From the NCBI GenBank assembly GCA_002269645.1, contig NIVC01001051.1, positions 1 to 64,000 of the forward strand: a stretch of 64,000 bases of DNA, in the 5' to 3' direction. Origin of the DNA: Macrostomum lignano. Lineage: Eukaryota. The notes under the pieces are model-generated. The model ran no database searches. It had not been told where the DNA came from and saw nothing but the letters and a program-made list of their open reading frames with translations. Position 1 is the stretch's first letter. Each line of letters begins with the position of its first letter. Shown in pieces: positions 12,510-54,900 of this stretch. The translations under genes and the position numbers were made by a program.

Positions 12510-15500
12510 GCCGTTGCTGCCCTCCTGGCGCTGCTGCGGCTGCGTGGCGGCGCGTCGCTGATCGACTTGCTTTCCGCGAAGTAGCCGATCTGCGTTTGCT
12601 GAGCTGGGGCGGGCAGGGCCGCCTTCAACCCCGCCACGCCAGCGAGCGCCCGTTTGGCTTTTGCGCTGGCTGCGGGTTTTTATTGTAGTGATACTAAAAA
12701 TAGAACAGACGTTATCTTGCTGCCCAGGGTAAGACTCAAATTCAAACAACTATTAAACAATAAACAGTGTAACTGTAACTGTTTGACAGGGTTTTGAACT
12801 GAGGTTTGTAGTCTTGATCTAAGAAAATTAAATCTGTTTTCATAAACAAATGTCGATGAAAAAATTATCTACACTAATCACATAAACCTATTCTTATGAC
12901 CATCTGTAATTAGAGTTTTAAAACAAAATGTACTCGAAAAAATGCAAAACAATTAATTTGCTTAGTATTTAAAAAAAACTAGGGTGTGATTACTAGTTTA
13001 TCTTTGTAGGTTATATAATACATATTTCTGCAATTTTTTAAGGATTTCAACTAGACAGATTAGGTAAATAAATTAAGGAATAAATTATACTTAGCTGTTT
13101 AGATGTCACACTAGAAATATACTTGTAATAGTTGGAAATCATACAACTGAATTTTGCCATGACAAAAATCTTGATCCTAGACAAAATCTTGATTCTGTAG
13201 CAGAAGTAGCTTCATCATGCAGAGGCATTAATAAAGAATAATTTAATTCATTGAATTATAGTTTAAATTTCAGTCCAATTATTTCCATTATCTATGCCGA
13301 ATTTGCCTTCCTTGAATCAGAAGCTGCCCACTTACTAAGAAGCCAGAGTGGAATGCAATTTTCAATGCACAGTATTAGATTGTCATAATATAATATACAT
13401 TTTAAGTGTGATAATTCTGTGACTTGACTTATTGAAACAACCAAAATAACAATATTTATTAGTTCAGCTGCGAAGACATGATTCATGGTCATTGCATCTT
13501 AATTTTAAAGAGTAGCTATGGATATTATGCTTGGTATTATTTCTCGTAAAAGGCTCGCATAGTGGCACTGTTGAAACAATAGCACTGTTTTGAACTTCGA
13601 ATCTTAGTTATATTTTTGTCATTTTGAATATGTTATCCAAATTATCGGATAAAATTGTTCCGTAAAGTTGGATGCAAGAATAAAATAGTGGATAAAAACC
13701 CTAAAATTTTCAATTACAGTATGCTAATATCAATAATAGGCCAAATCTTCTACGCTCGTTAATCTCTACACGTTCAGAAAAAATTAACCGAAACATTTTT
13801 AAGCTAAAAATGCGCTAAAACAAGAATAACACTCTTTATTTTTTATAAAATAAAATCAGCCGATGTTTTTACTAGTTATAAAATATTGACGAAACTATTC
13901 AGTACAGTGTATTAGAATAAAACAGACTCGTTGCTGCTGCTTTGTTTAAATTGTTGCCTTAAATAACGGATTAGCCGGCAGTAGAATAATCACCAATGCA
14001 TGTAATTGTCGCTTGCTCTGAAAGCATTAAAAATGGCTTGATCTCACATAAGCAAAATATGCTGTTAAATGTGAGAGCTTTAGTTCAAAAGCTAAATAAT
14101 TGACACATTACCCAAGAACGACTTATACTCGTAGTTAGACACGTGTACACTCGTATTTTCGTATTACAGTACGCTCATGCACATGTAAATGTAAATGTAT
14201 TTAAATGTAAGATATCATTACCAAACAGTAGTAAAGGATAATGTAAGGACGTAGTAAAAAGGACATCGCTAGATCGGACTCAATTTAAAAAAATATATAT
14301 TAACTACTAGAGACCACGTGGTAATAATTAGGGACATCATTACAACAGTATATGTATTTTTCATATATCTTGTGAATTTTAGCATTGAACAGCATTTGGA
14401 ACAAAAAGATGCTCTAGAGAACGCATATAGCTCCTAGGTTGGGTTGTGCTAACGATCGTCAGATTTTAGTGAGAAAATCCGCGCTATAAAAACGGTTTCC
14501 AGCATGAAGTCTATATAATAACATATGCATGCACATCGTAGCTCGTATGTGCATCTACACGGGGCATGCATGCATCGACGCAATCATGTACATGTATTCT
14601 CGACTCTATTCATCCACTTCTTCGGTCAAATTTATTGTCTAATTTTTGCATTTGCAGGCCGGTCGAGTACACTACACCCTACATGTACACTACGTCATGT
14701 AATCTGCAGTGTACACCGTCAATCGGGAATCATATATACACGTATTATTTGTACATGTAATTAACGCTTACTTATTACGAATTAAAACATATATGCAATC
14801 CTTGTATTTCGACTGCAATAATAATAAAAATATCACATGTACAATACATGTATAATATGTCCTTGTCTTAAATTATATGCCACAAAAATTACTCATCAGA
14901 TCGACTTACGACGAGTAACTATATGATGTCATAGCAAAGACAGAAATGTCATGTATAATAATAAGTACAGAAGATATTGAAATACAAGTAATATGTCCAT
15001 GTATGCATGTAGTACATGCACATGCATGTAATTATGTACATGCAAGCCACAAAATGTGTATTATAATTAAGTAAATTTGCATGTACAATACAGAATTACA
15101 GTAAAAGGTGTCAAAGAAAAACAGCTGTAGGCACCTAAAAGATGGCATCTCAAGAAGAATGCAGATAGAGTTGAGTTGCTATAGCTATACCCATTCTACA
15201 TTCTCATATTGTTGCTTGGCTAAGCTGCCGTTGACGAAAGGCAGACATTGAGAGAAGCCCCGCGGCCCCAGTTCAGTCCTGCATGGCTTAAAAGTGGCGC
15301 CGTGCTCTTATGGGTGAATATTAAGCTGACAGTCAATGAGCTAGTGAATAAATAGAATGGAGCGATGGAATTGTGGGCCATCTATAATAGAAGCGCATGC
15401 AGTGAGCCACCATCTCCCTGCCCCAATGGCAGTTCTAACCACCTAATTGTTGCTGTCTATAAGTGCAGCTGGGTATGGGCGACTGTTATGCATAAAAGAG

Positions 15501-24209: not shown

Positions 24210-27200
24210 TCAGGCGCTCCCATTGTCTCCCATGCCGTCCAGTTGACCGTCAGCGGGTCCGGAGAAATTATCAAACAGAGGATTCTGCATCGCCTTGCTG
24301 TTAATGGCTGCCCAGGCCTGCTCTCTCCTGGCCGCTTCCAGTGCCTCGCGCTGCCGTTCCTCTTTGTACCGATTGGTGCACTCGTCGAACAGGCGCTGGT
24401 TCATCTCCATCAGCAGCTTGAGCGCATTGTAAATCAGTCCATGAATTGTCTTGTTCCAATGCTGCTTGGTCTGGTACAGAGCCGGGAACACTATAGGCAG
24501 CACTTCGCGCACGTTCTCCGACATCAGCGACAGCACGTACTCGTTGTTCCAGAAGTACAGGGCGCGCTCGGCCACCTGGGTTTGGGATAATGCCGGATGG
24601 GATCTTGATAGATTCCATTGGGATAATGCTGAATGGAATCTTGATAAATCCCATTGGGATAATGCTGAATGGCATCTTGATAAATCCGATTGGATAATGC
24701 TGAATGGCATCTTGATAAATCCCATTGGGATAATGCTGAATGGCATCTTGATAAATCCCATTGGGATAATGCTGAATGGCATCTTGATAAATCCCATTGG
24801 ATAATGCTGAATGGGATCTTGATAACTCCCATTGGGATAATGATGAATGGGATCTTGATAAATCCCATTGGGATAATGCTGAATGGGATCTTGATAACTC
24901 CCATTGGGATAATGCTGAATGGCATCTTGATAAATCCCATTGGATAATGCTGAATGGGATCTTGATAACTCCCATTGGGATAATGCTGAATGGGATCTTG
25001 ATAAATCCCATTGGATAATGCTGAATGGGATCTTGATAAATCCCATTGGGATAATGCTGAATGGCATCTTGATAAATCCCATTGGAATAATGCTGAATGG
25101 CATCCTGATAAATCTCATTGGGATAATGCTGAATGGGATCTTGATAACTCCCATTGGGATAATGCTAAATGGGATCTTGATAAGTTCTCTAGGGATAATT
25201 CTGGAATGGGATCTTGATAATTTCCGTTGGGATAATTCTGGAATGGGATATGATTATTTCAGTTGGGATAATGCTGAATGGGATATTGATAATTCCAGTT
25301 GGGATAATGCTGAATGGCATCTTTTGGATGCCAGGAGTAGGACGGTGACTAATGGGATATTTGAGTTTCAGTAAAGGGATTTTTGGAACGGGACAATGGC
25401 ACATGGGATTTATCAGTTCAGAACAGTAAGGATGTCGAATAGGATATTCTGAATTATAGTTCAGTCGTGAGGACAATTTAACTCACCTGAAAGTGAGGCG
25501 AGCTGACGCACTTGGACAGCTGGCCGAAAAGCGGCTGGATGACTTTCTGGAACTCGGCCGGCTCGATAACGTCCAAGATCTCTTCGAGCTCGTTGAGAAA
25601 CATCACCTCCTTGGGCGAGTGAACTTTTGGCCAGAATTTGAGCAGGCCAAGCAGCACAGGCTGGGTGAGGGTGTGGTCCTTCTCTAGGAACTGCACCACG
25701 CAGTAGGCCAGCTGCGGGTGATAGACGCTCAGCGATTTCACTTTGTGCAGCGGCAGCAGGACGCGCAGCAGGAACACTTTGTGCTCCTCTTTGAGCGGCA
25801 AGGCGAAACCGTTGATGATGCTGCCCAGAATCTCCAGCAGCTCGGCGATGCCGTTGTGGCGCTCGGTTTCGTAGATGAACCTGCGATTCGGGTAGGAGAT
25901 TGAAGGGAAGAAATAAGGGGAGAATGAATGAATGGAAAAAAGGGAATGAAGGGAAGAATGGGGGGAATGAAGGGAGGGAAGAATGAAGGGAGGGAAGAAT
26001 GAAGGGAGGGAATGAAGGAAGGGAAGAATGAAGGAAGGGAATTATGAAGGGAGGGAAGAATGAAGGGAGGGAATGAAGGAAGAGAGGGAATGAAGGAAGG
26101 GAATTATGAAGGGAGGGAAGAATGAAGGGAGGGAATGAAGGAAGGGAAGAATGAAGGAAGGGAATTATGAAGGGAGGGAAGAATGAAGGGAGGGAATGAA
26201 GGAAGGGAGGGAATGAAGGAAGGGAATTATGAAGGGAGGGAAGAATGAAGGGAGGGAATGAAGGAAGGGAAGAATGAAGGAAGGGAATTATGAAGGGAGG
26301 GAAGAATGAAGGGAGGGAATGAAGGAAGGGAGGGAATGAAGGAAGGGAATTATGAAGGGAGGGAAGAATGGAGGGAATGAAGGAAGGGAAGAATGAAGGA
26401 AGGGAATTATGAAGGGAGGGAAGAATGAAGGGAGGGAAGAATGAAGGGAAGGAATGAAGGAAGGGAGGGAATGAAGGAAGGGAATTATGAAGGGAGGGAA
26501 GAATGAAGGGAGGAAATGAAGGAAGGGAAGAATGAAGGGAGGGAAGAATGAAGGGAGGGAAGAATGAAGGGAGGGGATGTAGGAGGCAATAAAGAAATAA
26601 ATTACATTGACAATATATTATATCAGTAAACTACAAGTGAGCATTAAAAATGAATTTCAAAAAGCCTTACAAGAAAATAAGCAGACCTAATTTACAAAGA
26701 ATGACTCACCTGTAGAAAATATTATTAATATGCTTGCGGATCAGGCCGCGCAAGCCCACAAACTTGCCGTAGATTCTGTGCAGAATAGTTTTAAGAAAAT
26801 CGCGCTCCCTCGGATCCTCGCTGTCGAACATGTCCAACAGCTGCAGCACGAAGGCGTGATCGATGCACCGCTTAGCCAGCGACGCTTGAAAGTCGGGCGA
26901 TTCTAAGAAACGCAGAAAAAACTCGCACACCAGGTGCAGATGCGGCCAGGCCGCCTCCAGATTGGGCTCGTCCTCTTCCGGATCGAATTCCGCGCCGAGA
27001 GGATTGGACGGCGGCGGCAGGGTGCGGAACACGTTGGCGGCAAACATGGCGACGGCGTCGGTGTACACAGGCTCGGTCAGGGCGCCCTGGGCAACCGTGA
27101 CGAATTCTACAAGCTCTTGGAGGGCCAGGCGCTTCACCTCCTTGTACTTGAGGTCGGAAGCGGGTCCTGGGCGAAGTCGAAGACCACGCAGCACTGGCGC

Positions 27201-36300: not shown

Positions 36301-37955
36301 GCGTAGCCAAGAATTTCTCATGGGGGGGATGCAAGGATATAAATGAGTAAAGCTGCTGCTACTTGTACAGCTTGCTGGCCCAATGACAGTTCACAAGAAA
36401 AGTGCCGTAAATCAAATATGTAGGTGATAGGTAGCTATGAACAGCCAGTCAAGTTTCTAATTCGATGAAAATCGCACAATTTAGTGAAAAAAATAGAAAA
36501 AATTCTTTCTGAATGCTTGAGTAAATGAAAATCGTTTTTTACTTGCTGCACTAGCATGCACTATGCTTTCCAATGTATCAATTTAGCTTTTCAACAATAT
36601 TTTGCTTTCTAATCAATGTAGCACCAATATATTTTAGAGCTGTAGAGCAATATGTTAAATAAAAACAACAAACTGGCAGTCTGACACAGTAAAGAGTTCA
36701 CAATTACAATTACAACAGCCGCAGGCGAGTTTCAAAACGCCGTGAGTATTCCTCAATCACACACTTGTATGGCAGTTGAATGTCTTTGTGCACTGACAGC
36801 ATTGCAAGTCCGTTCAGCCGGCTCTCGCCCGTGGTTGACCTGGTATGGGTCTTCAAAAGACAACGCATACTAAATGATCTTTCAGCTGTGCAAGTTGTCA
36901 CTGGGATAGTGAGAAAGATCGTCAGTAGGTCATGGATGTTTGGCCAAAGACCCTTATTGCAGCGCTTGATTGTGTCGGAGATGGTCATGGTACTTCGCTC
37001 AGCTGATGGCAGGCTCTTACAGAATGCTTGCCAGCGTTCAAATTCAGCTAAGCATATTGCGACTGGCTCCAGAAAGAAGCTGTACTCGTTGAATGCCTCC
37101 GTTGCAGCCAGAGTGGCATCTGCATTGACGCAGTTGGCGGGTAAAAGCTTGGTCATTTTCATGGCAATCTTGGCTGATCTTGAAAAGCGCTCACTGAGCT
37201 TGGAAATGACGAGATCCAGTGCACATACATGCGCAACCTCCAAAATTTGGTCGGCCGTGCGACTTAGTTTTAACAAAAATGCGACGTAGTTTTCGGCCAA
37301 AAATGCGACTTACATGAAAAAAACCTGAAAGCAAAATTAACGCAACTTTGGGTAAACGGCAGGAGTAACTATGACTGTCTTTATTAAGGCAAAATGCTTC
37401 GTCAGCTACTTAATACTACTTTGGTATTTATTTGGGTGGGCATTTTTGCAACTTACCTTGGTTGGCCGCCAAATCAGTCGTCCATATCGGCCAACTATTG
37501 TGCATGTATGGTTTTGACTCTTGTCATTCCTAATCGTATTTGTACCCCATGTGGCACTAGAACAGTACACTTGACACGGAGTGTTTTAGGCATGATTGTA
37601 CAGTGTAAGGTTGCAAAAGTGGGGAGTGGCAGAGATACATATGTATATATAGCTGTATGGCACAGGATGGCACAAGCTAAGGCTAAGTCAATGCATGCAG
37701 CGATAAAAGCAGTCTGTAAAGCCAAATAGTGAAAGTTAACCTTAACTTATAGCACCTTGGCAGCCTATGCTGTCTGCCTGCATCTGATACGAGCATATAA
37801 CTAAACTACCAAGGCAATTGGTTGTATTTACACTTACTTTCTGTACATGAATTGGTAAAGGTAAGGGCTTTTAAATGTTTTATTTATATAGTAATACTCA
37901 TAAATCAATTTTATTTTATCACCAAAATCATATACTCGACTTAATCTTTCACAGA

Positions 37956-39587
37956 ATGATGTACAGCCTTAGTTGTCTTTGCCTACTGATTCTAAGTGGC
38001 ATCCTAGCTATCAATGGTATTCTAGCTGAGAGTGAGTGCTCAATTGTTATAAATGAGTTAAATACTGATGAGCCTAATATTGGATCTCAAGAATTTTCAG
38101 AGTTCATTGAGCTGAAGAAAGTTTGTTCCACAACTGCAATGCTATTAGGATCAGTGCCAGTGAGACTCCGTGATTTTCTTCTGATTGGAGTTCAAGAATA
38201 TAGCGGCGATTTTAGACGACCTGTGGTTTCATTTTCTGCTGACTTCTATCGGTCCTCGGGCTTCAAAACGGACAGCAGTTTCTTTGTTATTGCATCAAAA
38301 GAGAAGCAGGAAGCAGCAGATATGTTTTTTACCGATACATCTATTGGGTATCAGGGAAAAACTAGACATGGGCTGCCAAGTTCCGCTCCTAGTGGATCAT
38401 CGCAGTCATCCATCATTGATTTTTTCAAGTCTGCTAGTAAGACAATTCCAACAGAACCAAATGCATTAAAGAATGGGAATGGTAAAAGTGCTATGGCCAT
38501 TATTCTCTTGTATCAACGAGACTTTTCTAGATCAGAATCGGACAGTTCAAGTTCCACAACTGCCAGTAGCATTGGAAAACTGCGACTAGCTAAAATGCAT
38601 GCAACACAAAGAAGACCTGTTTATGAAGATAAAATTATCATTGATAACTCATTAGCTGAAATTATTAGGAACAATGTGCATGACATGATCATCTATGCAC
38701 GAAGTACACAAAATAACAGGTGCACATTTTTTGAGTCCATTTATCGTAGGCTAAGAGACAAGCCCAACTACATCTTAAAGCCAGCAAGAGAATGGGATGA
38801 ACTTGGTCATGAGGACTATTCAATAAACCGGTGCCCTGAATCCAGCAGTGAGTTACGAAAGCCTTTGCTTTTTACAAGGTGGAAACTTGGACAGTTGACT
38901 CCAGGTAGAGAAAATGACTGCTCAGGTGCTCATTGGATTTTAGAGGACAATATTGAAGCCATCATAAATACACCTTCAAGAGAAGCAGGTACATTGGCAG
39001 ACTCAGCATTAGCATCTGCTTCATCAGCAACAGAAAGAATCGAAATGCGACTAGCTCCTGCTCCAGCTCCATGTTCTGAAAGCTCACACCGTAGTGAATT
39101 GGCCAGGTCCTATGAATTTTCAGAGCAAATAGCAGCTAATCGAGATCATGCTGTTCAAACTGCTGCTGCAGAAACTTCTAATTTTTGCTCTGCTGCAAAT
39201 GTACAGGAAAGAAGAGAGTTGTTGGAGAATGACCAGCAAACAAGCAAACTACAAGTGGAAATTATTAGGCAAGTAAATATTCAAAGACAATCAACGAAAC
39301 GATCACTTTGCCAAAGTCCTATTGTTGATTTAGATTTGAGCGACTCAAGGGGTTCAGGTGATGTTGAAATAGTACAAGTAAATACTGCAGAAGCAGGGCC
39401 ATCGCAAAGAAAAATACCATGCATAAGCACATCTGCAGACGCATGTCTAGCCACTTCAGTATCAAAGCCCTCGTCTTCCTCTATGATGGGCGAAAATATT
39501 GAAGTTTTCCCTAAAAAGGACTGGGAGGATACATCTGGTTTTCGAGAGGAGTGGTTACATTCTTTGGAGATGCACCAGTCACAGTAA
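37956..39587 (+). CDS. Transposon-borne ORF: signal-peptide-like N-terminus, lamin-tail-domain-like module and Ser/Ala-rich linker (543 aa if unspliced)
   Basis: Starts MMYSLSCLCLLILSGILAINGILA, then SIVINELNTDEP...EFIELK and later SINRCP...TPGRENDC. Start follows a 94-nt intron (37861-37954) with an upstream in-frame stop. Ends at a GTAAGT donor (39584). Confidence 0.75.
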   Translation: MMYSLSCLCLLILSGILAINGILAESECSIVINELNTDEPNIGSQEFSEFIELKKVCSTTAMLLGSVPVRLRDFLLIGVQEYSGDFRRPVVSFSADFYRSSGFKTDSSFFVIASKEKQEAADMFFTDTSIGYQGKTRHGLPSSAPSGSSQSSIIDFFKSASKTIPTEPNALKNGNGKSAMAIILLYQRDFSRSESDSSSSTTASSIGKLRLAKMHATQRRPVYEDKIIIDNSLAEIIRNNVHDMIIYARSTQNNRCTFFESIYRRLRDKPNYILKPAREWDELGHEDYSINRCPESSSELRKPLLFTRWKLGQLTPGRENDCSGAHWILEDNIEAIINTPSREAGTLADSALASASSATERIEMRLAPAPAPCSESSHRSELARSYEFSEQIAANRDHAVQTAAAETSNFCSAANVQERRELLENDQQTSKLQVEIIRQVNIQRQSTKRSLCQSPIVDLDLSDSRGSGDVEIVQVNTAEAGPSQRKIPCISTSADACLATSVSKPSSSSMMGENIEVFPKKDWEDTSGFREEWLHSLEMHQSQ

Positions 39588-39714
39588 GTAAATGGAAACT
39601 GACGAACTGTAAATTAATGTATAGTGTACTGTGTATTGCACTTATTAGCATATTGCTTTTAGATACTCACAAATAGTCCAAATCCCAAAATATTCTCTAA
39701 TTTGACCATTGCAG

Positions 39715-42098
39715 ATCATTTTCAAGAAAATTTGTGTCACAAGAAATGAAGACATGGTTTCAATATGTTCAAAACACCGAAGATCTATCAAGATCTGGAA
39801 TACAATGTCGGATCTGCAGAAAATTTTTGAGTGCACATAAGAAAAAGGAGACAAATCTAGAGAGCCAACGTAAGTTAACTTTTGCAACAGAACAAGGCTA
39901 CATTCCCAAAGGTCATGCAAAAGATAGCGTACGAAGAAAACTACAGGAACATTCATCAAATACACTTCACAGTGACGCCATAAAGTGGATGAAGGAAAAA
40001 CATACTTCAGTTCTTGCAAAGCAACTCAAACAGATGAATGAGGCCGCTAGACTAGCTAAAACTAAACGAGATGAAATAACAGCCCGAGTTTTGACAACAG
40101 TTTATGCCGAAGTCAAATCTAATATTCCATTCAGTGCTCATCCAAATATAATTGATTTACAAGTAAAAAATGGGTTGGATATGGGGAGCCATCATAAGCA
40201 TCGCAAAAGTGCCGCAGCAATGGTGGAATCAATCAGTAATACAATGCATCGGACATTTGTGAATTACATTAAAAGTGCTGACAATCTTCCGATTTCTATT
40301 GTACTAGATACAACGTCTGATATTCATTCAAACAGCTACGTCATGATATACTTCAGAGTTCTTGAAAACAGCCAACCTTTGATGTTTTTTTATCGGTTTA
40401 AACGTCTGACTGAAGTAGAGACTGGACGAAGCATTTATGAACTTCTCATCCGTTTATTTTCGGATGACAAGCTAGAAGATGAAATCAAACGAAGGCTATG
40501 GGGGGTGACAACTGATGGTGCATCCGTAATGACAGGAAGTCGAGTGGGATTAATAAGTCAACTGAGGCCTTGGGCTAGCAAACAATTTTTTCAGCACCAT
40601 TGTGCAGCGCATAAGTTAGAACTTTCAATCTATCATGCCTTTGAAATCTTCCCATTTATGCAACATCTCGATAAGAATATAAATTCTCTACACAAATTTT
40701 ATATGAGCCACGCTGTTAAACGTAAGGCATCTTTGGCACAAACTTCGGAAGCACTCAACTTGGTTTTCTATGAATTAAAAAGAATATATCGCATCAGGTG
40801 GGTTGCATCGGAAGTGTCTGCTCTTGATGTGATTCGAAAGTCGTATTACTTGCTTCTGACAAATTTAGAAAATATCAAATCACCTTCCTCAGGCTTTGAT
40901 GACGAAAGTAAAGCAACTGCCTCTGGATTATTGAAAACATTGCAAAATGTCCGGTATTATTCATTACATCTATTTCTCATGGACATTCTAAAATTACTGG
41001 AATTTGAGTCCTTGCAGTTTCAAAGAGCCAAGGGTACATTTATTGGCTTGCAAGAACGCCACACTAACCTTATACATTCACTAGAAACCTTAAAAACGAA
41101 CAATGGTCCTCGCATTGTGGACTTTTTGGCTTCCTGCAAGTGTCGTCGAGTTTTGGGAACTGCAGATGGATATCCGCAGCTGGAATACCATTCAGGATGT
41201 CACACAAGAGACCTATCTTATTCTAACTTTGCTTGTCCTTCCGGCCCTGGAAGCAGCGATCCAACAGAGAGGTTTGAGTTGAAGCAACCAGGTTCTGCTG
41301 CAGACATCTCTAAGAAATAGATTATTTGATGCTAGTGGACGTGGCAGTGTTGTTGACATGGGAGCTTATCCAGCACTGGATGAGATTCGCAGTCGAATCA
41401 TTGATAGCATAATTGATCAGCTGCGTAATTATTTTCCTGAGGATGACTACTCAATATTTAATGTGCTCAACCCAGTGTTATTGCCTAATGCTGAAACATT
41501 ACATACTGTCTTTACATACAGTTCGAGAATCATACCTCTTGCTAGACGGTTTGGAATGGAAGATGACAGCTCTGAATCTGAAACAGAGGACCATCTTTCT
41601 GATTCAGACTGTAGAGATGCAGATGCTTCAGAACGCGCTACAGAAAGGACAATCTCTGGTCAGTTCGGTCTACTCCTAAAAAGTTTGATCACTTCGCATA
41701 GTGTTGACTTCTGTGCCTACAAAGGCAAAGGTCCGGTGAAATTTTGGAGTCACTTTCTAGAGACAAGAACTGTTGAATGGCTGCCCAGAATAAAGAATCT
41801 AATTATGGTTGTGTTAACTTTGCCAATATCATCAGCTGAGGCTGAAAGAGGGTTTTCTATCTATAAGCACATTGCCTATGACAGGAGAACACGCTTGGCA
41901 CCAAAAACATTGGAGCATCTACTACGGATTCGAATAAATGGGCCTCCGCTGATGAAATTTAAGCCGGATATTTATGTCAATGATTGGCTGAAAAAACACT
42001 GGCGTTCTGATGCTCCTGGAGGTCAACGGCAAAAAGAATCCAACGTAGACGAGGAAAATAAAGATTCTGATTCTGATTTGCTAAGTGGACTATTTTGA
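39715..42098 (+). CDS. hAT transposase (KIAA1586/C17orf113-like); ORF track pieces 39734-41320 and 41358-42098 joined by a putative 49-nt intron (41272-41320) or a frameshift
   Basis: Motifs CRIC...H..(N)..H, LQVKNGLDMG, SIVLDTTSD, GVTTDGASVMTG, HCAAHKLEL, RIRWVAS, LPISSAEAERGFS. The D, D, CxxH, RW and E catalytic elements are all present. Confidence 0.9.
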
Positions 42099-42439
42099 AA
42101 GTTTTTTATCAGTTTTAATCTGCTACAATTTTAATCAATTATTACAATGGTACATGCATAATAATTAAGACTACAGTTCTTCTAAGTTCATATATAAGAC
42201 CGTTAGAATCTTGCAGTTTTAATTTGCTAATTAAATATTATTAAAAGTATGATTTGCAATTGTAATAGGGCTGAAAAATTACTGCTTATAAGTTATTCTA
42301 TCCCTATTTCTATTCCTTAGCCATTTCTGGCTTCGTAATTCTTAATTTTTCAAATTGATGCGTTAATGCACACGTAGCCTACACCCTAGTAAGTGATACA
42401 TTAAATTCATCCTAAACTAATCCTATCCTAATAATCCTA

Positions 42440-43430
42440 AAGATGCTCTGCGACTTAACTCAGTCCTGCTGCGACTTGCCTCGGCCCTGCTGCGACTTAC
42501 TCGGTCCTGCTGCGACTTAGCTCGCCCTCGGTGCGACTTAGCTCTCGCTCGGTGCGACTTAGCTCGCCCTCGGTGCGACTTAGCTCGGTCCTGCTGCGAC
42601 TTAGTGCGACTTAGCTCTCGCTCGGTGCGACTTAGTTCGCCCTCGGTGCGACTTAGCTCGGTCCTGCTGCGACATAGCTCGCCCTCAGTGCGACTTAGCT
42701 CTCGCTCGGTGCGACTTATTTTGCCCTCGGTGCGACTTAGCTCGGTCCTGCTGCAACTTAGCTCGCCCTCGGTGCGACTTAGCTCGGTCCTGCTGCGACT
42801 TAGCTCGCCCTCAGTGCGACTTAGCTCTCGCTCGGTGCGACTTAGTTCGCCCTCGGTGTGACTTAGCTCGGTCCTGCTGCAACTTAGCTCGCCCTCGGTG
42901 CGACTTAGCTTGGTCCTGCTGCGACTTAGTGCGACTTAGCTCTCGCTCGGTGCGACTTAGTTCGCCCTCGGTGCGACTTAGCTCGGTCCTGCTGCGACTT
43001 AGTGCGACTTAGCTCTCGCTCGGTGCGACTTAGTTCGCCCTCGGTGCGACTTAGCTCGGTCCTGCTGCAACTTAGCTCGCCCTCGGTGCGACTTAGCTTG
43101 GTCCTGCTGCGACTTAGTGCGACTTAGCTCTCGCTCGGTGCGACTTAGTTCGCCCTCGGTGCGACTTAGCTCGGTCCTGCTGCGACTTAGCTCGCCCTCG
43201 GTGCGACTTAGCTCGGTCCTGCTGCGACTTAGTGCGACTTAGCTCTCGCTCGGTGCGACTTATTTTGCCCTCGGTGCGACTTAGCTCGCCCTTAGTGCGA
43301 CTTAGCTCTCGCTCGGTGCGACTTAGTTCGCCCTCGATGCGACTTAGCTCGGTCCTGCTGCGACTTAGCTTGCCCTCGGTGCGACTTAGCTCGCCCTCGG
43401 TGCGACTTACCTTGTCTTCAGTGCTGCAAC
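42440..43430. repeat. Subterminal minisatellite of the nested hAT element
   Basis: ~18-bp units built on the core GTGCGACTTAGCTC. Confidence 0.92.
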
Positions 43431-46400
43431 TTACAGCACTTACAACTCTTTTTGTGTTTTTCTCTTTCTCTTTGCTCCCTTTTTCTCGTTTTTTCCTTTT
43501 CCTTTCCCCTTTTTCGTCTTTTGTTTTTTCGTTTTTTTTGGCGGTTAATCAATTTTGCGACTTACTTGGTTGGCCGCCAAATCGGTCGGCCGGATCGGCC
43601 GACTCGGCCGACTGTTGCGCATGTATGCCAGTGCAGGATACCAGACATTCACTTTAAAGTTCTCAAAAGCACTACCACTATGTGCATTGCTGCAATGCTG
43701 GCTGCGCTGCAAAAAAAGTGCTCTGTACTTATTCAGAATTGGCTGATCGTCATTGTGTTGCTTATGAAGTCTGTCGGCAGTTTCAAACAGCTCTTTGAAT
43801 TTTGCATCCGAACTGTCACTTCGCCAAGTCCTTAGAAGTTGGAGAACTCGATCAGCCTCCTCGCTAGCAACGATGAGGTCCATGGCCTTCCCCTACGATG
43901 AAAAAAGTTGAAAATGAGATTAGCCAAATGCACATACAAAAAATCATAAATATTAATATGACATGAACTTGACATCGTGCAGGCATATCATAATGCGTAA
44001 CATTTTGCAATTTGCATGGTTCTATCTATCTAACAGACCGACAATCCAACACCCACCCTTCAGTGAAGGCAAAGTTAATTATAAAAACTAATTTTCTATT
44101 CCCTTACTTAACTAATTAAACTTAAAGCAACTTTAATATACAAAAAGTAGCTTCAGAACTAACAAAGAATCAAAGAGCAATCAGTTAATTCCAAAAGAGC
44201 AATTAAAAATCAAATTTCCATAAATCTGATAGAAGCACTTGCCTGAAATATGACTGAAAGACCACGCCTTGAACCAAGCAGTGCTTGAAGGACATGAATG
44301 CCAACAATAGTCACTGCATTGACGATGTTGTTGTACACAGACAGGTCCGCAGAATAAAAGTACTCTGCAGCCACATCAAAGACCGCCAGAAAGTCAGAGA
44401 CGCAATCTATACTGTCCACAAACCGTGTTAGGCAGAATGGCTTCAATCGCATCTTGAGGCACTCTGTCTATGTGGCATCACTCTGCTTAGCCGCGACAAG
44501 TTCAGCAAACTTTTTTGTCCTGACTGCTGAATGCGAGAAGTGCTTAGATGCAGCATCAAGTGTGGCATACACACTCTTCAGTTCCCGAATGCCTCGCTTG
44601 CTGTCTACTGTTGCCCTGGTGCAAAGATTAAGACAGTGACTGTAGCAGTGGATGTAGATAGCATTAGGGCATGTTCTTCGAATTCGACCTTGAACACCAC
44701 CTTCAGCACTCATAACCAAAGCACCGTCGTAGCCTTGCGCAACAAGAAGTGACTTGTCCAGTTGCAAGAGCTCCAGCTTTGCATCAATGGCATCAACAAT
44801 TGCAGGAGCATCTTGTTCCTTTAGTTCTACAAAGCCAACAAAGCGCTCTTGAACATCTCCATCGTTGTTGACATAGCAAATCGTGATTGAGAGTTGCTCA
44901 GAATGTGCAATATCACTTGTTCCATCAACAATAATGGCATAGAATGATTTAATTGGCTGAACAACTGTGCAAGTCATTACAGTGTTAATGCAGTCTATTA
45001 GCCTATTTTGTATGGCAGGTGAAAGGCCAGTGGAATTGAGAGGTCTACTCTCCAAGAGACTTGCTAGTTTTTTATCTTTGACAGCATCTCTTTGAAGAAG
45101 AGCTCGCAAATTTCCTTGTGTGTAATCGACACGTTCACGTCCGTCGGGAACCTTTAATCTTCCTGCATCTTCACGATGGCCACGCAGACCCTGGTTTGTG
45201 CGCCCAAGGTATTCGATTGCCTGGATGACAGCCTCAAATATATACTGGTTATCCAGTAGGGCTACACTAGTTGATGTCTTCATTTGCGCTGACACATCAG
45301 CAGCATTTGTGGCTGCTTGCAATTCTACCTGGCGGAATGTATCACATGCCTGCTGGTGGTAGTGACAATTACAATGCTTAGTGTAAATCTCCATAATCTT
45401 CTTGAAGTTGGTAGCTAGTATTGTTACAAGCTGACCAAGCTCTTGTTTGTTTCTCTCACCAATGCTAGTTGAGGGTGCAAAAAGTACACAAGGTAGACAG
45501 AAGACTCCCTGCTGCTTTGGTGAAAAGTAGAAACAGCTATTCACTCCAGTGAGATGATAATGGTGTAGCCTATACTTCTGCCTCATTCCCTCAGTGAAAG
45601 GAAGCTTGTAGCTCTCAGAAATGTTCAGTACTTCTTTCATGAAAAAGCAACAATGTTCAGCAGATAGCTTGCCTTGCATTTGAAGCTGCATAGCATCGTA
45701 GATATCTGGAACAGCAATCTCAGTGGAAGGTGGTGGCGGCTTAGGTGGAGAGACAGAATTTACACTCACAGGCAACACTTCCAAAGCAGGAGCAGCAACA
45801 GGGACAGAGTCCGGGCCTATGTACTCTGCATTTCCATCTCCATGTAAACCAGAGATAGCACAAACAGTAGCAGTAGTCGTTATTTCTATAGTTGACCTTG
45901 TAGTAGATACAGGTACAGATGAGTTCTGACTGTGTAGCAATTGTTGCGAGAAAAAAAATCGATCTATCTTTGATTGTTTTGTTGGAGGTGGAGCCATACT
46001 ACGAGCATATACTATAGTCAGTGCCTCCAGAATACTATGGTAGTTAAGCTAAAGTATATTTCACTTGGTGGGGGGTTGGGCCTTGGGCCTTGGGGTTGGG
46101 ACTCGGGAGGGTGAAGAACTGAAGATGTACATATAAGGGTCATATATAGGATGTACAATCACAATGTACATATATGAGCGTACAACCAACTACCTTGCCC
46201 TTACCCCTCAGTCCCACACTCTGACTCTCTTCCTCTCTCCTGAGCCTCACACTCTTTTCCAAGACTAAGCCAGAGGCAAAGGCAAAACTAGGAAGGAATT
46301 TTTATTGTGCTACTCGTATCTTTCAAATTCATGTTATATTATTAGACAGTTTTTGGATTAGAATTCTGTTCAGCTATAAGAATCAAATGTAGTATATATC

Positions 46401-48329
46401 GACAAAATTAATAACACTAACAGTACAGTAATCACATCAGTATCAGTATTGAATACAAACCTTAGAGATTTAGTAATTTCTTACACCCACCAACTAGGCC
46501 CACGGGGGGGGATATATCCCCATATCCCCCCTTGCCTACGCCACTGAATATGCTTAGTTAATAGTATTAGAAATCAGACAAATTTGGAATACTTAGATTT
46601 GGAATCAAATTAACCAAATCTTTAGTTTAAATCAAAATTGGAAAATTGACAATCCAAATACTAAATAATTGCTTTGATATCAGAACAAATATTTGGAAGT
46701 TGAAAGTAAAATAGTAGTATTGTGGCTTTGAAATGATTTAATGAAATAAAGAATTGGGGATAGTTATGCTCTAAGAAAGGCAGAAAGAATAGAGATATAA
46801 CAATTAAGTATATTTATATTAAGATTTAAAAAAGCTTTAGAAGTAAAAAACTTGAAAGTTTGAGTTTAAAGAGTTAAAAACGCTAGGGATTATAGGCATA
46901 TGGTTTATAAATAAAAGGAGGAAATTAAGCAAGGATAGGACAACACATGGATATGATATATCTTGAGGAAAGGCAGGGGTGCTTGAGCAGTTGCAAGCTA
47001 GTTGTGCTTAGATTCAAGGCTTTAAGACAAGTGAAGCATTAGGAATTAAGTTTATATAACATAGATTCAAGGGCATTGATTCTTACAAACTTGGAAGGGT
47101 GGGGTTAGCATTGGTCTAGGCACATTTTATTAAACAATAAGTAAAGAGGATAGCCTATTGGTCAAAGGCTACTAAAGGGATATTGTTCACTAAAATATTT
47201 GTATTTAATATTATTTGGTATTCAAATCAGAATATAATTTCAAATAGCTTGTTTAAGACTTGTTTAAGGCTATAAATAGTATTATTATATCATTTTTAAT
47301 ATTATATAATATTATATAACATTTGAACTATATAACAGTTATATAACATAACATTTAGGCTTATATATCTTTGTTAATATCTATAGATCTATGCTCATAT
47401 ATGCACAATACCTAGCTGACCTAGCCAATCTAGTCAGCTGGCAAGAGGCCTAGCTAAGGTAAATTGCAAAAATATCTATCCCATAAATAATAACATATTA
47501 CAAATTAGTTGATAATGTATTTAGCCTTAAAAATACTTTTATAATTATTTCTACCATTTACCAAAAATTATGTTAATGTTTGCTTTGGGTTCTTTCATAG
47601 GTAAATTGCATTTCTGGTAAAAAATTAAGTCACATAGCTATTGTTAATCAAGGGGTTTGCACATGTATGTCTATGCTTAAATAGTAGCTTAAGGCAAACA
47701 CTTGAATGTTTTAAGAAATAGAGGAGATACAATACCTAAGCATAGTCTAAGTTATTGAATACTCCTATTGCAGCCAAGGTCTAAACCATTTAGTTTCTAA
47801 ACTAGGTTTAAACCATATTAGCCTTAGAATTTAAATACCAAAGGTATTATTAAGGCCCAAGCATTGATAAATGGCTATTTCTAATGAGAAAAATTGTTAG
47901 GAAAGGGCAATAGTGTTTTATAGCCAAAGAAGGCCTATTCTTTATTATAAAAATATATAAATAATGATAGACAATGGCTTTGGCTATCTTCTTACCTAGA
48001 ATAAACTAATCAAGATATTTGTTATATTAGTTTGGTTAGCTATAGTTCATGGCCTCATTGCCATTAATGTAATAATATGCTTATTCCTAAACAAAGTAGT
48101 AGCTATAAATGCTAGTCTCCTCTAGGTATTCTTCCTAGCAATGATTGACTATATTTAAGGTCTAATACAATGGGCTAGTGTTTAACTAAATATGAACTTT
48201 TATTAATCAATATTATTAATCAAGAAGCCTTGCATAAGATTGATTGAGATTGAAGGCTATAAGATTGATTGCACTGTTGAAGACCATTAGCTCAGCCTAC
48301 GTAGAGCTAATGTAATAAATAGCTTGCTA

Positions 48330-48968: not shown

Positions 48969-51900
48969 ATGGGTGCCGACGTTAGTTTAGGCATCCAACA
49001 TTGGTCTCTGCAGTCCGCCTGCTGCTTGCTAATCCCAATACTAGCTGTTCTGCTAGCGCTGCCACCAACCAATGCTCAGACTGTTGACTCGGCCAGCCTG
49101 GCCCAACCAATTGTGTTTGGCCTGACTGTCCGACCGCTGGCCGGATCCAACAAGCCGGGTTGGCAGGGGGCGAACCAGGAGATTCTGGTTGGCAAGATCT
49201 ACGAATTCCAGCTATTCGGCCGAGACCTGTTCAACTTGTCGCTGCTTGGCTTCACGGAGCGCGAGCTCAATGGCTCCCTGGCCGACTGTCAAGACAGCAA
49301 GATGGCAATAAAATTTCCTATTGTTGCAAAGGATGGCAATATTGCTGTGAGCACGGTCTCCGTGCCAGTCAGCTCGTCAGTTACCTCCCACCTGTATCTG
49401 TGCGCCAAGGCTAGACGGGGCGATAGTACCGAAGCCTGGGTGTACTACGGGCCTGAGCTGAGGGTGTACGTAACCCGGCCTATCATACCGCTCTGGGTCT
49501 CTATTCTGTTCATCATTGGCCTGTTTCTGCTGTCTGGTGAGGCTTTGCTGCCTCTGAATTTGCGTTAAATTTCAATTTTTTTAACGTTTACAGCTGCAGA
49601 ATGTGCTTAGCCATCTTGTTAGCGTGAATCCATTGAGTAGTGCTGTAATGAGCTGGAATTGAGATCAGCAGCATCAGCTGGAAGTTCACTGTATCTTCCA
49701 TTGAGATGATCTGTGATCTCACTACATATTCCCTTGAGATGAGCTGAAATCTCACTGCATCTTCCATTGAGATGAGCTGAAATTTCACTGCATCTTCCAT
49801 TGAGATGATCTGGGATCTCACTACATATTCCCTTGAGATGAGCTGAAATCTCACTGCATCTTCCATTGAGATGAGCTGAAATTTCACTGCATCTTCCATT
49901 GAGATGATCTGTGATCTCACTACATATTCCCTTGAGATGAGCTGAAATCTCACTGCATCTTCCATTGAGATGAGCTGGGATCTCACTACATATTCCCTTG
50001 AGATGAGCTGAAATCTCACTGCATCTTCCATTGAGATGAGCTGAAATTTCACTGCATCTTCCATTGAGATGATCTGTGATCTCACTACATATTCCCTTGA
50101 GATGAGCTGAAATCTCACTGCATCTTCCATTGAGATGAGCTGGGATCTCACTACATCTTCCCTTGAGATGAGCTGAAATCTCACTGCATCTTCCATTGAG
50201 ATGAGCTGAAATTTCACTGCATCTTCCATTGAGATGATCTGGGATCTCACTACATATTCCCTTGAGATGAGCTGAAATCTCACTGCATCTTCCATTGAGA
50301 TGAGCTGGGATCTCACTACATCTTCCCTTGAGATGAGCTGAAATCTCACTGCATCTTCCATTGAGATGAGCTGAAATTTCACTGCATCTTCCATTGAGAT
50401 GATCTGGGATCTCACTACATCTTCCCTTGAGATGAGCTGAAATCTCACTGCATCTTCCATTGAGATGATCTGGGATCTCACTACATCTTCCATTAAGATG
50501 AGCTGGAATCTCACTGCATTTCCCATCGATATGAGCTGGAATGCGTTAGAGTCCAATTATCATTCATTGGGTGTAAACTGGGAAACTCACATATTAATGC
50601 ATATGCTCATATCATACCCATATAGTGTCATTTTGAGCCTGCTTAAGTGTCAGAAAAGAATTTTAAAGTTTTAGTTGTTCACTCAACCATTTCTAAGTCA
50701 AGCGCTGTCAGTTCTGTCCTGAGACTCCAAATGAGAGTTTGGGAAATCGTCGGGATAGGAAATGCTCTTGAGACTGTCTTGAGTTGCGTTTCCTGTCTGT
50801 CATGATTCTGAAATATAGCTTCAGTATTGACAAATCCTAATTCAAATTGGCACCTGTCAGTTCTGCTGGATAGATGCATTCACCCTGTGAGAGAATTTTG
50901 TGTTGAATCAGGTTCTTGTTATGCATATCTTCCAGCCTAAAATGTCTTACTCCTGTCTTCACCTTTCTCAAGTCTAACATGCTGACACAATCCGTCTCTG
51001 ATCTGGTCCCTGACTCGCACTGATCTGGTCCCTGACTCACTGATCTGTTCCCTGACTCACTGATCTGGTCCCTGACTCACTGATCTGGTCCCTGACTCAC
51101 TGATCTGGTCCCTGACTCACTGATCTGGTCCCTGACTCACTGATCTGGTCCCTGACTCACTGATCTGGTCCCTGACTCACTGATCCGGTCCCTGACTTAC
51201 CATAGGCCTGTTCTCTGGCCTGAACCTGGGCCTGATGGCGCTGGACATTGCCGAGCTAAAGATCATCTGCCGGGCCGGGACGGCCTCAGAGAAGTCCTAC
51301 GCAAAGCGGATCATACCGGTGCGAAAGAAGGGCAACTGGCTACTCTGCAGCCTGTTGCTGGGCAATGTTATGGTTAATACCACCCTGTCTCTGCTGCTGG
51401 ACGCATTAATCGGTGACGGCATCTATGCTGTGATCTCGGCCACTATTGGCATTGTCATCTTTGGCGAGATTATACCTCAGGCATTGTGCTCGAGGCACGG
51501 CCTGGCTGTGGGGGCCAGCACTATGCCTATTACAATGTTCTTCATGGCGCTCACCTCTCCGCTTAGCTATCCGCTCAGCTTTGTGCTGGACAAAGTGCTG
51601 GGCGAAGAGTTTCGTCAGGTGTGTTATGGTCAATATTAACTGTTTACTAGAGTCTATTTCCATATTCGCAATGTGTTTCAGTAGGAAATATCCCATTGGG
51701 ATCACAGGTGTCTCGGTATAAAATATTCCCATTGGTATCACAGGTGTCTCGGTATAAAATATTCCCATTGGTATCACAGGTGTCTCGGTATAAAATATTC
51801 CCATTTGGATCACAGGTGCTATAATAGAAAATATCCCATTGGGATCACAGGTGCTTTAATAGAAAATATCCCATTGGGATCACAGGTGCTTTAATAGAAA

Positions 51901-54900
51901 ATATCTCATTGGTGTAGTGACTTACGCGAGAGACAAAGTTTAGATGAACCATCAGCTTACGGCCCCGACTTGGGCGTGGGGTGCAATTATATATTTGAGC
52001 TCAAAGCTCTGTAATCGATTGCTTTAGAATAAGTGTACATCTACGATACAATGTACATGGGAGTTAAAATCAACGTGCCAAGAAGTGGTGTGCAGAGTAC
52101 AACAATTGGGATCACAGGTGCTTTAATAGAAAATATCTCATGGGATCACAGGTGCTATAATAGAAAATATCCCAATGAAGATCACAGGTGCTATAATAGA
52201 AAATATCCCAATGAAGATCACAGGTGCTATAATAGAAAATATCCCAATGAAGATCACAGGTGCTATAATAGAAAATATCCCAATGAAGATCACAGGTGCC
52301 ATAGAAAATATCCCATTGGGATCACGGGTGCTTTAATAGAAAATATCCCATTGGGATCACGGGTGCTTTAATAGAAAATATCCCATTGGGATCACGGGTG
52401 CTTTAATAGAAAATATCCCATTGGGATCACGGGTGCTTTAATAGAAAGTACCTGATTGTGATCACAGGTGTTTCAAAAAATATCCTATTGGGATCACAGG
52501 TGTTTTGGCTAGAAATATCCCACACTGACCCGAACAATCTGCTTATCTCCCCAGGTGTTCGACCGAAACAAGCTCAAAGAGTTCATAGCCGCGCAGGGCC
52601 TGGAGCGCACCGAGGCCAATATAATCCTGGGCGCGCTATCGCTTCAAAATAAAACTATTGGCGAAGTTATGCGCGGCCTCAGCGACGTGTACATGCTGCC
52701 GGCTGAGACCCTCATCGACTCCTTCACTATCGACCAGATCCGCGAGACTGGCTACACCCGGATCCCCATCTATGAGAAGGAGCGCCACAACATTATTAAC
52801 ATTTTGAATTTCAAAGATCTCACTATTGTTAACCGTGACACGCCAATGCGGGCTGATCTGATCTGCGAGTATTTCAACCGCCAGCTGCAGATTGTGTACG
52901 ATACGGACACGCTGGACAATGCGCTGAAGCTGTTCCTTAGCAACAGGATTCACCTGGCTATTGTGAAGCATCACGTTGGCGAAGAGGAAGGCAACGAGAA
53001 GGATCCTTACGAGGTCACGGTCGGCCTGGTGACGCTTGAGGACATTCTTGAAGAGATTATTCAGCAGGAGATTGAGGACGAGACTGATATTCCCGGTACT
53101 CAATACCTTTCTGGCTCCTACTCATCTGCCTTTCCCTTCTCTTTTCCCCATCTGCTCTTTTCCTCCCACTCTTCCACTCTTACCCTCATCTCCCCTCTCT
53201 TCCCGGTCCTCTTCTCCCCGGTCCTCTTCTCCCCGGTCCTCTTCTCCCCCGGTCCTCTTCTCCCCGGTCCTCTTCTCCCCGATCCTCTTCTCCCCGGTCC
53301 TCTTCTCCCCGATCCTCTTCTCCCCGGTCCTCTTCTCCCCGATCCTCTTCTCCCCGGTCCTCTTCTCCCCGATCCTCTTCTCCCCGGTCATCTTCTCCCC
53401 GATCCTCTTCTCCCCGGTCCTCTTCTCCCCGATCCTCTTCTCCCCGATCCTCTTCTCCCCGATCCTCTTCTCCCCGGTCCTCTTCTCCCCGGTCCTCTTC
53501 TCCCCGATCCTCTTCTCCCCGGTCCTCTTCTCCCCGATCCTTTTCTCCCCGGTCCTCTTCTCCCCGATCCTCTTCTCCCCGGTCCTCTTCTCCCCGGTCC
53601 TCTTCTCCCCGATCCTCTTCTCCCCGGTCCTCTTCTCCCCGATCCTCTTCTCCCCGGTCCTCTTCTCCCGATCCTCTTCTCCCCGGTCCTCTTCTCCCCG
53701 GTCCTCTTCTCACCGGTCCTCTTCTCCCCGATCCTCTTCTCCCCGGTCCTCTTCTCCCCGATCCTCTTCTCCCCGGTCCTCTTCTCCCCGATCCTCTTCT
53801 CCCCGGTCCTCTTCTCCCCGGTCCTCTTCTCACCGGTCCTCTTCTCCCCGATCCTCTTCTCCCCGGTCCTCTTCTCCCCGGTCCTCTTCTCCCCGATCCT
53901 CTTCTCCCCGGTCCTCTTCTCCCCGATCCTCTTCTCCCCGGTCCTCTTCTCCCCGATCCTCTTCTCCCCGGTCCTCTTCTCCCCGATCCTCTTCTCCCCG
54001 GTCCTCTTCTCCCCGGTCCTCTTCTCCCCGATCCTCTTCTCCCCGATCCTCTTCTCCCCGATCCTCTTCTCCCCGGTCCTCTTCTCCCCGATCCTCTTCT
54101 CCCCTGTGCTCTCCTCCCCTATCTTTCCCAGTCCTCTTCCCCCGTCTTCTCTCCTTTTCGCTCTCCTACCACCTTCGCTTATTTTCCTCCCTCCGTGTCT
54201 CCATCCCCTCTGCCATCTCCTTTCTGCCTAAATTCCCGCAATTCTCGCATTCAAAATTTCAGAGAATCCCACCGCAATCACTCGACAAAATGCGCGAGCT
54301 TTGAAGGGCCTGTGGAAGGAGCTGGCCTTTGGCGGCACCTCCGGCATGCAAATCCCAGTTCAGCTGAGAATGGCCGCCACCCAGAGCCTCGCTATGCGTG
54401 AGTAGAAAGTCTTTCTACATAGATATGGAAGCAGTTAAAGTTATTAAATGGTATTGCTTTGCCCATCTGCAGTGCATAGCGACCTGTTTGGCCGCAACGT
54501 AATTATGGAACCGGTGTTGGAGAAAATGTTCGAAGAGAAAATCCTTGTGCGTCACATGTTCATGTGAGTTGGCTTTGTTCAAGTCAAAGCAAGTTCTTCT
54601 TTCTGTTCTATTTACGCTATAATTAAATAGCAAGAGATGACCAAGAGAGATGAATTACGTAGAAAGAGATTAAGGACCAAGAAGAAGATTAATGACCAAG
54701 AGAAATTAATGGACAATGAAGAGATTGTGAACAAGAGAGATTGTGAACCAGAGAGATTGTAAACAAGAGAGATTGTGAACCAGAGAGATTGTGAACAAGA
54801 GAGATTGTGAACAAGAGAGATTGTGAACAAGAGAGATTGTGAACAAGAGAGATTGTGAACAAGAGAGATTGTGAACAAGAGAGATTATGAACAAGAGAGA

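Follow-up and report, generated by a model that had tools for sequence, protein, structure and literature searches.

Transposases are textbook nuclear enzymes. What, then, are a hydrophobic, signal-peptide-like leader and a lamin tail-like domain doing at the head of one? The question is raised by a transposon of the hAT superfamily (6,404 bp, positions 37224-43627) in a 64,000-nucleotide stretch of DNA from Macrostomum lignano (contig NIVC01001051.1 of assembly GCA_002269645.1; the whole stretch is called the window below), in which a first open reading frame (ORF), ORF1, encodes the leader and the domain and is predicted to be spliced in frame to the transposase. An earlier note on this locus, made from the sequence alone, had proposed that ORF1 is either captured cargo, co-transcribed with the transposase, or part of a new fusion architecture. 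Our analysis points, with a probability of roughly 0.8, to a recently inserted cut-and-paste hAT element that encodes one long transposase with an integral leader and a head of the lamin tail domain (LTD) type, and that belongs to a widespread clade for which we found no name.

A hAT element with an extended transposase

The limits of the element were read from the sequence. The 5' terminal inverted repeat (TIR), CATACATGCGCAAC (37224-37237, plus strand), is 100% complementary to the 3' TIR, its exact reverse complement (43614-43627, minus strand; 14 of 14 nucleotides), and the pair is flanked by a perfect 8-bp target site duplication (TSD), CCAGTGCA, at 37216-37223 and, in identical form, at 43628-43635. 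A perfect inverted pair of 14 nucleotides is expected about 0.1 times somewhere in 8 kb by chance, and the chance of such a pair with identical 8-mers directly flanking it is about 1e-6. The element lies within a hAT gene of another clade on the minus strand and, because deletion of 37224-43635 restores a continuous 256-amino acid (aa) frame of that gene, the insertion is both real and recent. The young transposon with perfect TIRs and TSD that the earlier note described is thus borne out.

The transposase part is distributed over two predicted exons. Exon 2 (39715-41271, plus strand), which could be aligned with the transposase part of 44 relatives, encodes a BED/TTF-like zinc finger (W..Y, C580xxC583, H...H) and the hAT RNase H-like core (D741, D810, C839xxH842, R904-W905). 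Exon 3 (41321-42098, plus strand) encodes the end of the insertion domain, the catalytic E1237 (41844-41846), the hAT dimerisation domain (41778-41933) and a C-terminal ...SGLF. The complete DDE, CxxH and RW signature is therefore legible in the sequence, in agreement with the intact motifs previously reported, and the dimerisation domain matches the Pfam model PF05699 (Dimer_Tnp_hAT; E 9.3e-8, 32.2 bits against a cutoff of 21.4). At the C-termini of the relatives, the same model is matched above the cutoff in five of the eight long proteins scanned and just below it in two more. The zf-BED match of exon 2 is weak (E 0.71), and the W..Y / CRxC / H...H module is conserved family-wide. Direct similarity to Hermes was seen only in the dimerisation region, and the window protein itself gave no Pfam match of the PF27073 or DUF4371 type; the hints as to its clade are precomputed hits on relatives only, namely PF27073 (FAM200-ZBED5 RNase-like) on L005 and a weak DUF4371 hit on L006. 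Judged by its TSD, TIRs, dimerisation domain and DDE/CxxH/RW residues, the element is a member of the hAT superfamily, and from this membership it would be expected to transpose by the ordinary hAT route, that is, by DDE cleavage with a hairpin formed on the flanking DNA, followed by integration with an 8-bp staggered cut. The extreme C-terminus, ...(R/G/N)S.(L/I/M)F-COOH, is common to many family members (e.g., LLSGLF, YSRLF, RSELF and NSALF; 42081-42095 in the window copy).

Fusion of head and transposase across a hAT clade

ORF1 (37956-39583, 543 codons) ends CA|GTAAGT, and through the acceptor ...CCATTGCAG|A at 39714/39715 it continues in frame into the transposase, exactly as the earlier note had it. 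The resulting intron 1 (39584-39714, plus strand, 131 nt), with its GTAAGT donor, CTAAT branch-like motif and TTGCAG acceptor, is well formed by sequence; a 53%-identical copy (L001) retains the GTAAGT donor in the same phase, and in L006 an intron some 200 nt long (AAG|GTAGGC ... TTTTCAG) occupies roughly that position. The predicted protein would consist, in order, of the leader, an N-terminal domain (ND) of about 305 aa, a Ser/Ala-rich linker that in most relatives carries a basic RKR-type patch, a WEDT module joined to the CxxC zinc finger, the DDE/RW core and the hAT dimerisation domain.

An exhaustive HMMER scan of a representative protein library (clusters at 50% identity) returned 171 clusters related to the ND, 66 of them at E<=1e-10, and the sequences of 154 relatives were fetched. 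Word-indexed searches had returned only 2 and 10 relatives, those of the ORF1 query being P0001 (92% identity) and P0002 (53%), and a homolog search with the full 1320-aa fusion and a metagenome-contig scan with the query A1 yielded, respectively, no match and no confirmed locus. In 44 of the 154 fetched relatives, the ND and a transposase of the same clade follow one another in the same order within one uninterrupted ORF. One of these, P0014, is collinear with the predicted splice without any offset, residue 542 of ORF1 aligning with its residue 427 and residue 8 of the transposase with its residue 436. Most ORFs that contain the ND alone are cut within or just after it on short contigs; about 20 extend through the linker and end at or within the junction motif described below, and none has the context of a stand-alone host gene. 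About 15, examined as protein sequences, stop at EWETTKYF, which we read as a second recurrent intron site. Every one of the 20 relatives whose names were looked up is unnamed or 'hypothetical', and so is each of the 11 distinct hits from the indexed searches; their sources are Logan, ENA, JGI, NCBI or GEM assemblies. Most members of the clade derive from metagenome or raw-read assemblies.

Intron 1 splits a conserved module, WEDTSxF..W…HQ | K.WF.Y…CRxC, which consists of the last 25 residues of ORF1 (first half, KDWEDTSGFREEWLHSLEMHQSQ, at the end of exon 1, 39501-39583, plus strand) and the first residues of exon 2 (K.WF.Y..N..P..S.FRCRxC). The two halves are contiguous and unbroken in more than 40 relatives, many of them single-ORF proteins, and the predicted splice of intron 1 gives the same collinear junction as in the latter. 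Because the intron interrupts this module, cis-splicing into one protein is the conserved design, and release of the transposase by spliced leader trans-splicing at 39715, as suggested in the earlier note, is not supported. A conserved internal Met at the junction that would allow a head-less transposase was looked for and none was found.

Purifying selection acts on the head. In the comparison of the window copy with L001, the ratio of nonsynonymous to synonymous substitution rates (dN/dS) is 0.24 overall, 0.16 in the ND (aa 26-340) and 0.51 in the linker; in the leader the ratio is 0.69 over 25 codons, yet hydrophobicity is kept. Taken together, the sequence comparisons indicate that head and transposase were already fused in the ancestor of an entire hAT clade that appears to be undescribed. 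The fusion envisaged earlier is not restricted to this copy, being the hallmark of a clade represented by 171 clusters.

The N-terminal domain as a probable divergent lamin tail domain

The ND (aa 26-330; 38031-38945, plus strand) is probably a divergent LTD-like beta-sandwich with three insertions. To obtain a template, bacterial segments containing EWIELYN were collected, of which 30 of 30 checked are PF00932 proteins, and hhalign comparison of the ND profile (78 sequences) with this LTD profile (95 sequences) gave a probability of 79% (E 1.6e-5) over ND residues 28-115, against 0.2 for the reversed-template control. When the three insertions, of about 30-45 residues each relative to the LTD, were removed, leaving a core of residues 26-135, 172-192, 236-250 and 284-330 hand-picked from the modelled strands, the probability rose to 95.8% (E 7.7e-9, 128 columns); the reversed template scored 0.3, and five controls with random C-terminal segments scored like the N-terminal half alone. 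Eight motif pairs are collinear in these alignments: VINE of the ND with VINE of the LTD, EFIEL with EWIEL, L.GY.L with L.GW.L, FFVIG with Y.VI, NGN..A.ILL with N.GD.v.L, VDMVVY with iD.v.Y, S.NRC with S..R, and FKLG.pTPG.eN with W....TPG..N. An AlphaFold2 (AF2) model of the ND built from a 10-sequence alignment (predicted template modelling score, pTM, 0.70; mean predicted local distance difference test score, pLDDT, 66) shows roughly nine main strands arranged in an LTD-like order, inserted helices and a helix at the N-terminus. The start and end motifs that the earlier note had associated with LTDs thus find a counterpart in the profile-profile match (79-96% against verified LTDs, the higher value and its E of 7.7e-9 referring to the hand-selected core).

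Several results weigh against this assignment. Sequence searches of Pfam, NCBIfam and PDB with 14-18 members returned no LTD or other match to the ND, and the PF00932 model of Pfam had no match to ORF1 at E<=1 and none at E<=10 in 14 members. The hhalign probability for the lamin A tail by itself was 0.05, and comparison with small alignments was weaker (23%, E 8.7e-4). Foldseek searches of PDB with two AF2 models, the second of which (P0027) is poor (pLDDT 51), retrieved no lamin tail and nothing significant (best E 0.48 and 0.065), and the first model also had no significant match in BFVD. Finally, the ND-LTD comparison is partly circular because the template was chosen via its own EWIELYN motif and the core segments by hand, both in view of the LTD hypothesis.

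A secretory-type head or a nuclear one

The leader, MMYSLSCLCLLILSGILAINGILA (aa 1-24; 37956-38027, plus strand), is the sole hydrophobic segment of the 1320-aa protein and was modelled by AF2 as a helix (residues 2-24). Among 49 members that include the VINE motif, a 9-mer with a Kyte-Doolittle (KD) value of at least 2.0 occurs within 45 residues upstream of that motif in 35, compared with 8% of control windows; it typically starts 0-12 residues after a Met and ends 5-16 residues before VINE. The hydrophobic, signal-peptide-like N-terminus of the earlier note accordingly extends to the family. Its hydrophobic character is family-wide although its sequence is not conserved (relatives are about 30% identical), and the leaders have short h-regions, small residues at -1/-3 and acidic residues afterwards, with textbook-like examples in many members (...SAIVFA|QNNCK, ...LCIAAA|PIKFG).

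Cysteines provide a second line of evidence. C28, which precedes strand 1 by two residues, and C57, which follows strand 2 by four, are both present in 41 members, both absent in 18 and split in 9 (Fisher p = 2e-9, uncorrected for phylogeny). Such paired gain and loss is the usual signature of a disulfide, which we would predict here; C293 and C322, 100% conserved, could be guessed to form a further one, and C256 is 95% conserved. In the Ser/Ala-rich variable linker (aa 331-515; 38946-39500, plus strand; dN/dS 0.51), which has conserved Cys pairs, many members carry a C-x32-C pair, with the cysteines 33 apart, after the ND (e.g., P0036, P0039, P0042; aa 373 and 411 in the window copy), in the context QC(S/T)SS ... 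D.C..L.L.P.G.N, suggesting a further small structured module between the ND and the basic patch. In 72% of members versus 25% of controls, the 45 residues upstream of WExT include a basic cluster, typically N.RKR(K/R)(L/I)S and, in P0002, PKKKRV, which could be a nuclear localisation signal (NLS) or a furin-type site.

On these grounds, namely the character of the leader, the covarying cysteines and a layout matching that of bacterial proteins with a signal peptide and an LTD, our leading reading, which we hold tentatively and at somewhat under even odds, is that leader and LTD were inherited as one secretory-type unit and that the protein is dual-fate or compartment-gated. The leader would engage the endoplasmic reticulum (ER), where the head would fold with disulfides (C28-C57); under a dual fate, only the molecules that escape or leave the ER would be imported via the basic patch and then transpose, and the head would act as a compartmental gate or provide a second binding function. 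The stronger version, in which the clade is truly made into the secretory pathway, with a cleaved signal peptide, a disulfide-bonded LTD head and chromatin access gated by ER or perinuclear sequestration with regulated release or by passage between cells, we regard as unlikely; if true, it would be an unprecedented way to control or spread a DNA transposon.

The points that count against the secretory-type reading are of several kinds. The leader is signal-peptide-like by hydrophobicity heuristics rather than by a trained predictor, the ND of the window copy contains no N-glycosylation sequon, the conserved ND cysteines are odd in number, the C28/C57 statistic ignores phylogenetic non-independence, and the basic patch of the window copy is degraded (SQRKIP). 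No hydrophobic or transmembrane segment was found between the ND and the transposase in 19 full-length members scanned, hence no stop-transfer anchor is predicted. The reading thus conflicts with nuclear access, since no transmembrane segment would leave the transposase cytosolic, and we know of no route by which a soluble transposase fully translocated into the ER lumen could reach chromatin. Inspection by eye of the linkers of P0001, P0002 and the window copy revealed no 2A-like NPGP skipping motif.

There is a near-equal rival, likewise a serious candidate that we would place below even odds: the head works in the nucleus, the ND being an LTD-type DNA-, chromatin- or lamina-binding accessory domain and the leader not a functional ER signal, rather an inefficient relic, an intramolecular plug or a peripheral nuclear-envelope tether. 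Transposases must act on nuclear DNA, and lamins carry in the nucleus the very fold that the ND profile resembles. An NLS-like patch is found ahead of the zinc finger in 72% of members (PKKKRV in P0002), a conserved internal Met for a head-less isoform is missing, and so are sequons in the window ND; the leader helix, moreover, was modelled with a fairly high pLDDT of 66-80. What a nuclear head explains less well is that the leader keeps its signal-peptide character without sequence conservation among relatives about 30% identical, that C28 and C57 are gained and lost as a pair in the way usual for disulfides, and that the leader stands directly before VINE, as in bacterial secreted LTD proteins.

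Integrity of the window copy and its possible products

With exons of 1628, 1557 and 778 nt, the gene model totals 3963 nt and encodes 1320 aa without an internal stop, and in this respect the arithmetic and the open frame of the earlier three-exon model hold. The 49-nt intron 2 (41272-41320, plus strand), in which GT..AG restores the frame, does not convince: it has a weak donor (GTTTGA) and lacks a pyrimidine tract, and the two frames around it overlap only over 41283-41320, for which reasons a 1-nt frameshift at this site is an equally good explanation. The length of 1320 aa holds only if intron 2 is real.

The window copy may accordingly be dead or non-autonomous, its protein ending at 41320, before the catalytic E and the dimerisation domain, owing to a 1-nt frameshift in a variable linker. 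Besides the poor splice signals and the short overlap of the frames, this possibility, which we consider substantial though short of even, gains from the ORFs of L005 and L006, which are continuous across the region, and from the position of the junction in an alignment-variable stretch. On the other side, GT..AG at 41272/41320 restores exact collinearity, the other 3.9 kb are without a stop codon, and the TIRs and TSD are perfect.

A more intricate proposal, which we find improbable, is that the gene has two outputs: unspliced mRNA would yield a secreted 543-aa protein of ND and linker with a function of its own, and spliced mRNA the full transposase. In its favour, the stop codon TAA lies within the GTAAGT donor both in the window and in L001, and an intron is present at or near the junction in at least three lineages (window, L001 and L006), to which the approximately 15 ND-only ORFs stopping at EWETTKYF may be added. 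Yet many relatives are intronless and have the fusion as their only product, ORF1 closes with 25 residues of a module whose remainder is encoded by exon 2, and a stop just inside an intron is the default rather than a designed feature.

Two further alternatives can be dealt with briefly. That ORF1 is captured host cargo, a fragment of a host secreted-protein gene acquired by transduplication and co-transcribed with a transposase freed by trans-splicing, could draw on the position of ORF1 inside the TIRs and upstream of the transposase with an intron between them, and is effectively refuted, since 44 single-ORF relatives couple this ND to a transposase of the same clade, the junction module continues across the intron, the ND is under purifying selection between 53%-identical copies and no ND-only ORF has a stand-alone host-gene context; because the fusion is the ancestral design of the clade, both the captured cargo and the trans-splicing of the earlier note are rejected. 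Transduplication of the Pack-type was ruled out on the same clade-wide tie of ND to transposase in single ORFs. Equally remote is a domesticated host-transposase fusion gene, which an ORF that is long, intact, under purifying selection and extended by an N-terminal domain would resemble, as in known host-transposase fusions; loss of TIRs and TSD and an immobile locus, which mark domestication, are not seen here, where perfect TIRs and a TSD enclose the gene, the element is nested in the ORF of another transposon with the empty site restored on excision, and a MITE-like derivative (miniature inverted-repeat transposable element) and subterminal repeats are present.

Comparison with known systems

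Like Ac, hobo, Hermes and Buster (and, by the clade hint, the Buster-like FAM200/ZBED5 group), the element has an 8-bp TSD, short TIRs, the DDE, CxxH and RW residues, a PF05699 domain, a putative zinc finger upstream of the catalytic part, subterminal repeats and MITE derivatives; it differs from them in adding about 540 N-terminal residues (leader, LTD-like domain and linker) before the zinc finger. To our knowledge, no described hAT begins with a signal-peptide-like leader, and in the literature we found no hAT with such a leader or a lamin tail domain. By the TSD, TIR, PF05699 and catalytic features examined, it is a hAT member with an N-terminal module for which we found no precedent. No name, Pfam family or paper for this architecture was found in a search of the literature and Pfam, with Repbase and Dfam outside its scope.

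Among LTD proteins (PF00932), the bacterial secreted proteins that combine a signal peptide with an LTD are the closest in layout, sharing the motif order VINE(I/L)N ... E(F/W)IEL ... L.GY.L ... FFVIG ... N.G(N/D)..(I/V).LL ... (V/I)D.V.Y ... S.NR ... W/F....TPG..N and a leader directly before the first strand and its VINE motif. The ND departs from them in escaping the Pfam model and Foldseek, in its three insertions and extra conserved cysteines, and in its fusion to a eukaryotic transposase. Host-transposase fusions such as SETMAR, GTF2IRD2, the ZBED-type genes and KRAB-transposase genes also join a non-transposase domain in frame upstream via an intron; those are immobile host genes without TIRs, whereas here the fusion lies inside an intact mobile element and is ancestral to a clade. 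A functional analogy may be drawn to DNASE1L3 (DNase gamma), which is a nuclease that carries both nuclear localisation signals and a signal peptide for the ER: in both cases a DNA-cutting enzyme would combine a secretory leader with basic NLS-like motifs and compartment-gated access to chromatin. DNASE1L3 is a host gene of unrelated fold, and the signals of the transposase are only predicted.

What makes the clade of interest is that, upstream of the DNA-binding finger, a large group of hAT elements preserves both a signal-peptide-like leader and an LTD-type domain with cysteines. A working leader would imply a new level at which transposons are regulated or transmitted; even without one, the head would be a new hAT accessory domain and a new eukaryotic branch of the LTD fold. 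Either way, the domain family appears to be missing from resources of the Pfam/Dfam type, and the apparently young, near-intact element of the window suits direct transposition assays.

Termini and subterminal structure

The first 287 bp of the element (37224-37510, plus strand) are in themselves a complete MITE-like miniature element, a 5' cap that holds the 5' TIR together with three TGCGAC(T/G)TA motifs and, internally (37444-37510), a duplicate of the element's 3' end in which the TIR is preserved at 12 of 14 positions. Position 37511 is exactly where homology to the 92%-identical copy L002 sets in, so the present 5' end may be borrowed; the sequence suggests that it was acquired from a MITE or is the product of aberrant gap repair. 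The following segment (37511-37955, plus strand) is the 5' untranslated region (UTR) and presumed promoter region, of which 37511-37788 is 84% identical to L002:146-427. Relative to window positions 37789-37799, about 660 bp are extra in the 5' UTR of the 92%-identical copies (L002:428-1085; also L003 and L004), and a 103-aa minus-strand ORF lies in this extra DNA of L002, which makes it an indel or a further nested insertion.

At the other end, Tandem Repeats Finder (TRF) delineated a 3' subterminal minisatellite (42448-43409, plus strand) of about 48 copies of a 21-bp unit containing the motif (G/C)TGCGACTTAG, the one on which the TGCGAC(T/G)TA copies of the 5' cap are also based. Inside the element are 43 of the 44 matches to this motif in the window, where 0.6 would be expected, and three related copies occur at its 5' end. 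The motif is also present near both termini (37257-37313 and 43556-43566), with all copies in the same orientation, unlike the subterminal binding sites of hAT elements, which are usually inverted; the 21-bp repeat could represent the expansion of a transposase-binding motif or be no more than a minisatellite. On the short contigs of the relatives L005 and L006, TIRs could not be recognised. A 12 of 14 match to the TIR, CATACATGTGCAAA, lies outside the element at 47656-47669 on the minus strand and is probably due to chance because BLAST shows no similarity to the element around it.

Surroundings in the window

The 64-kb window contains no second copy or fragment of the element, and it gave no Rfam match. 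The hAT gene in which the element is nested (36710-37223 and 43636-45997, minus strand) comprises at least two separate ORFs, of 526 and 256 aa, and includes a DUF4371 domain at 44468-45997 (E 8.5e-15) and a Dimer_Tnp_hAT domain at 36710-37300 (E 5e-10). The GC content of the window varies widely, from 28% to 70% between 2-kb bins. At 9359-12749 on the minus strand, ankyrin repeats are encoded by long ORFs (835 and 476 aa) rich in GC, and ORF fragments encode parts of a protein kinase (7816-8679), PP2A B56 (24210-25154), plectin repeats (49588-50556) and a CBS domain (52555-54231), a gene content that looks animal-like.

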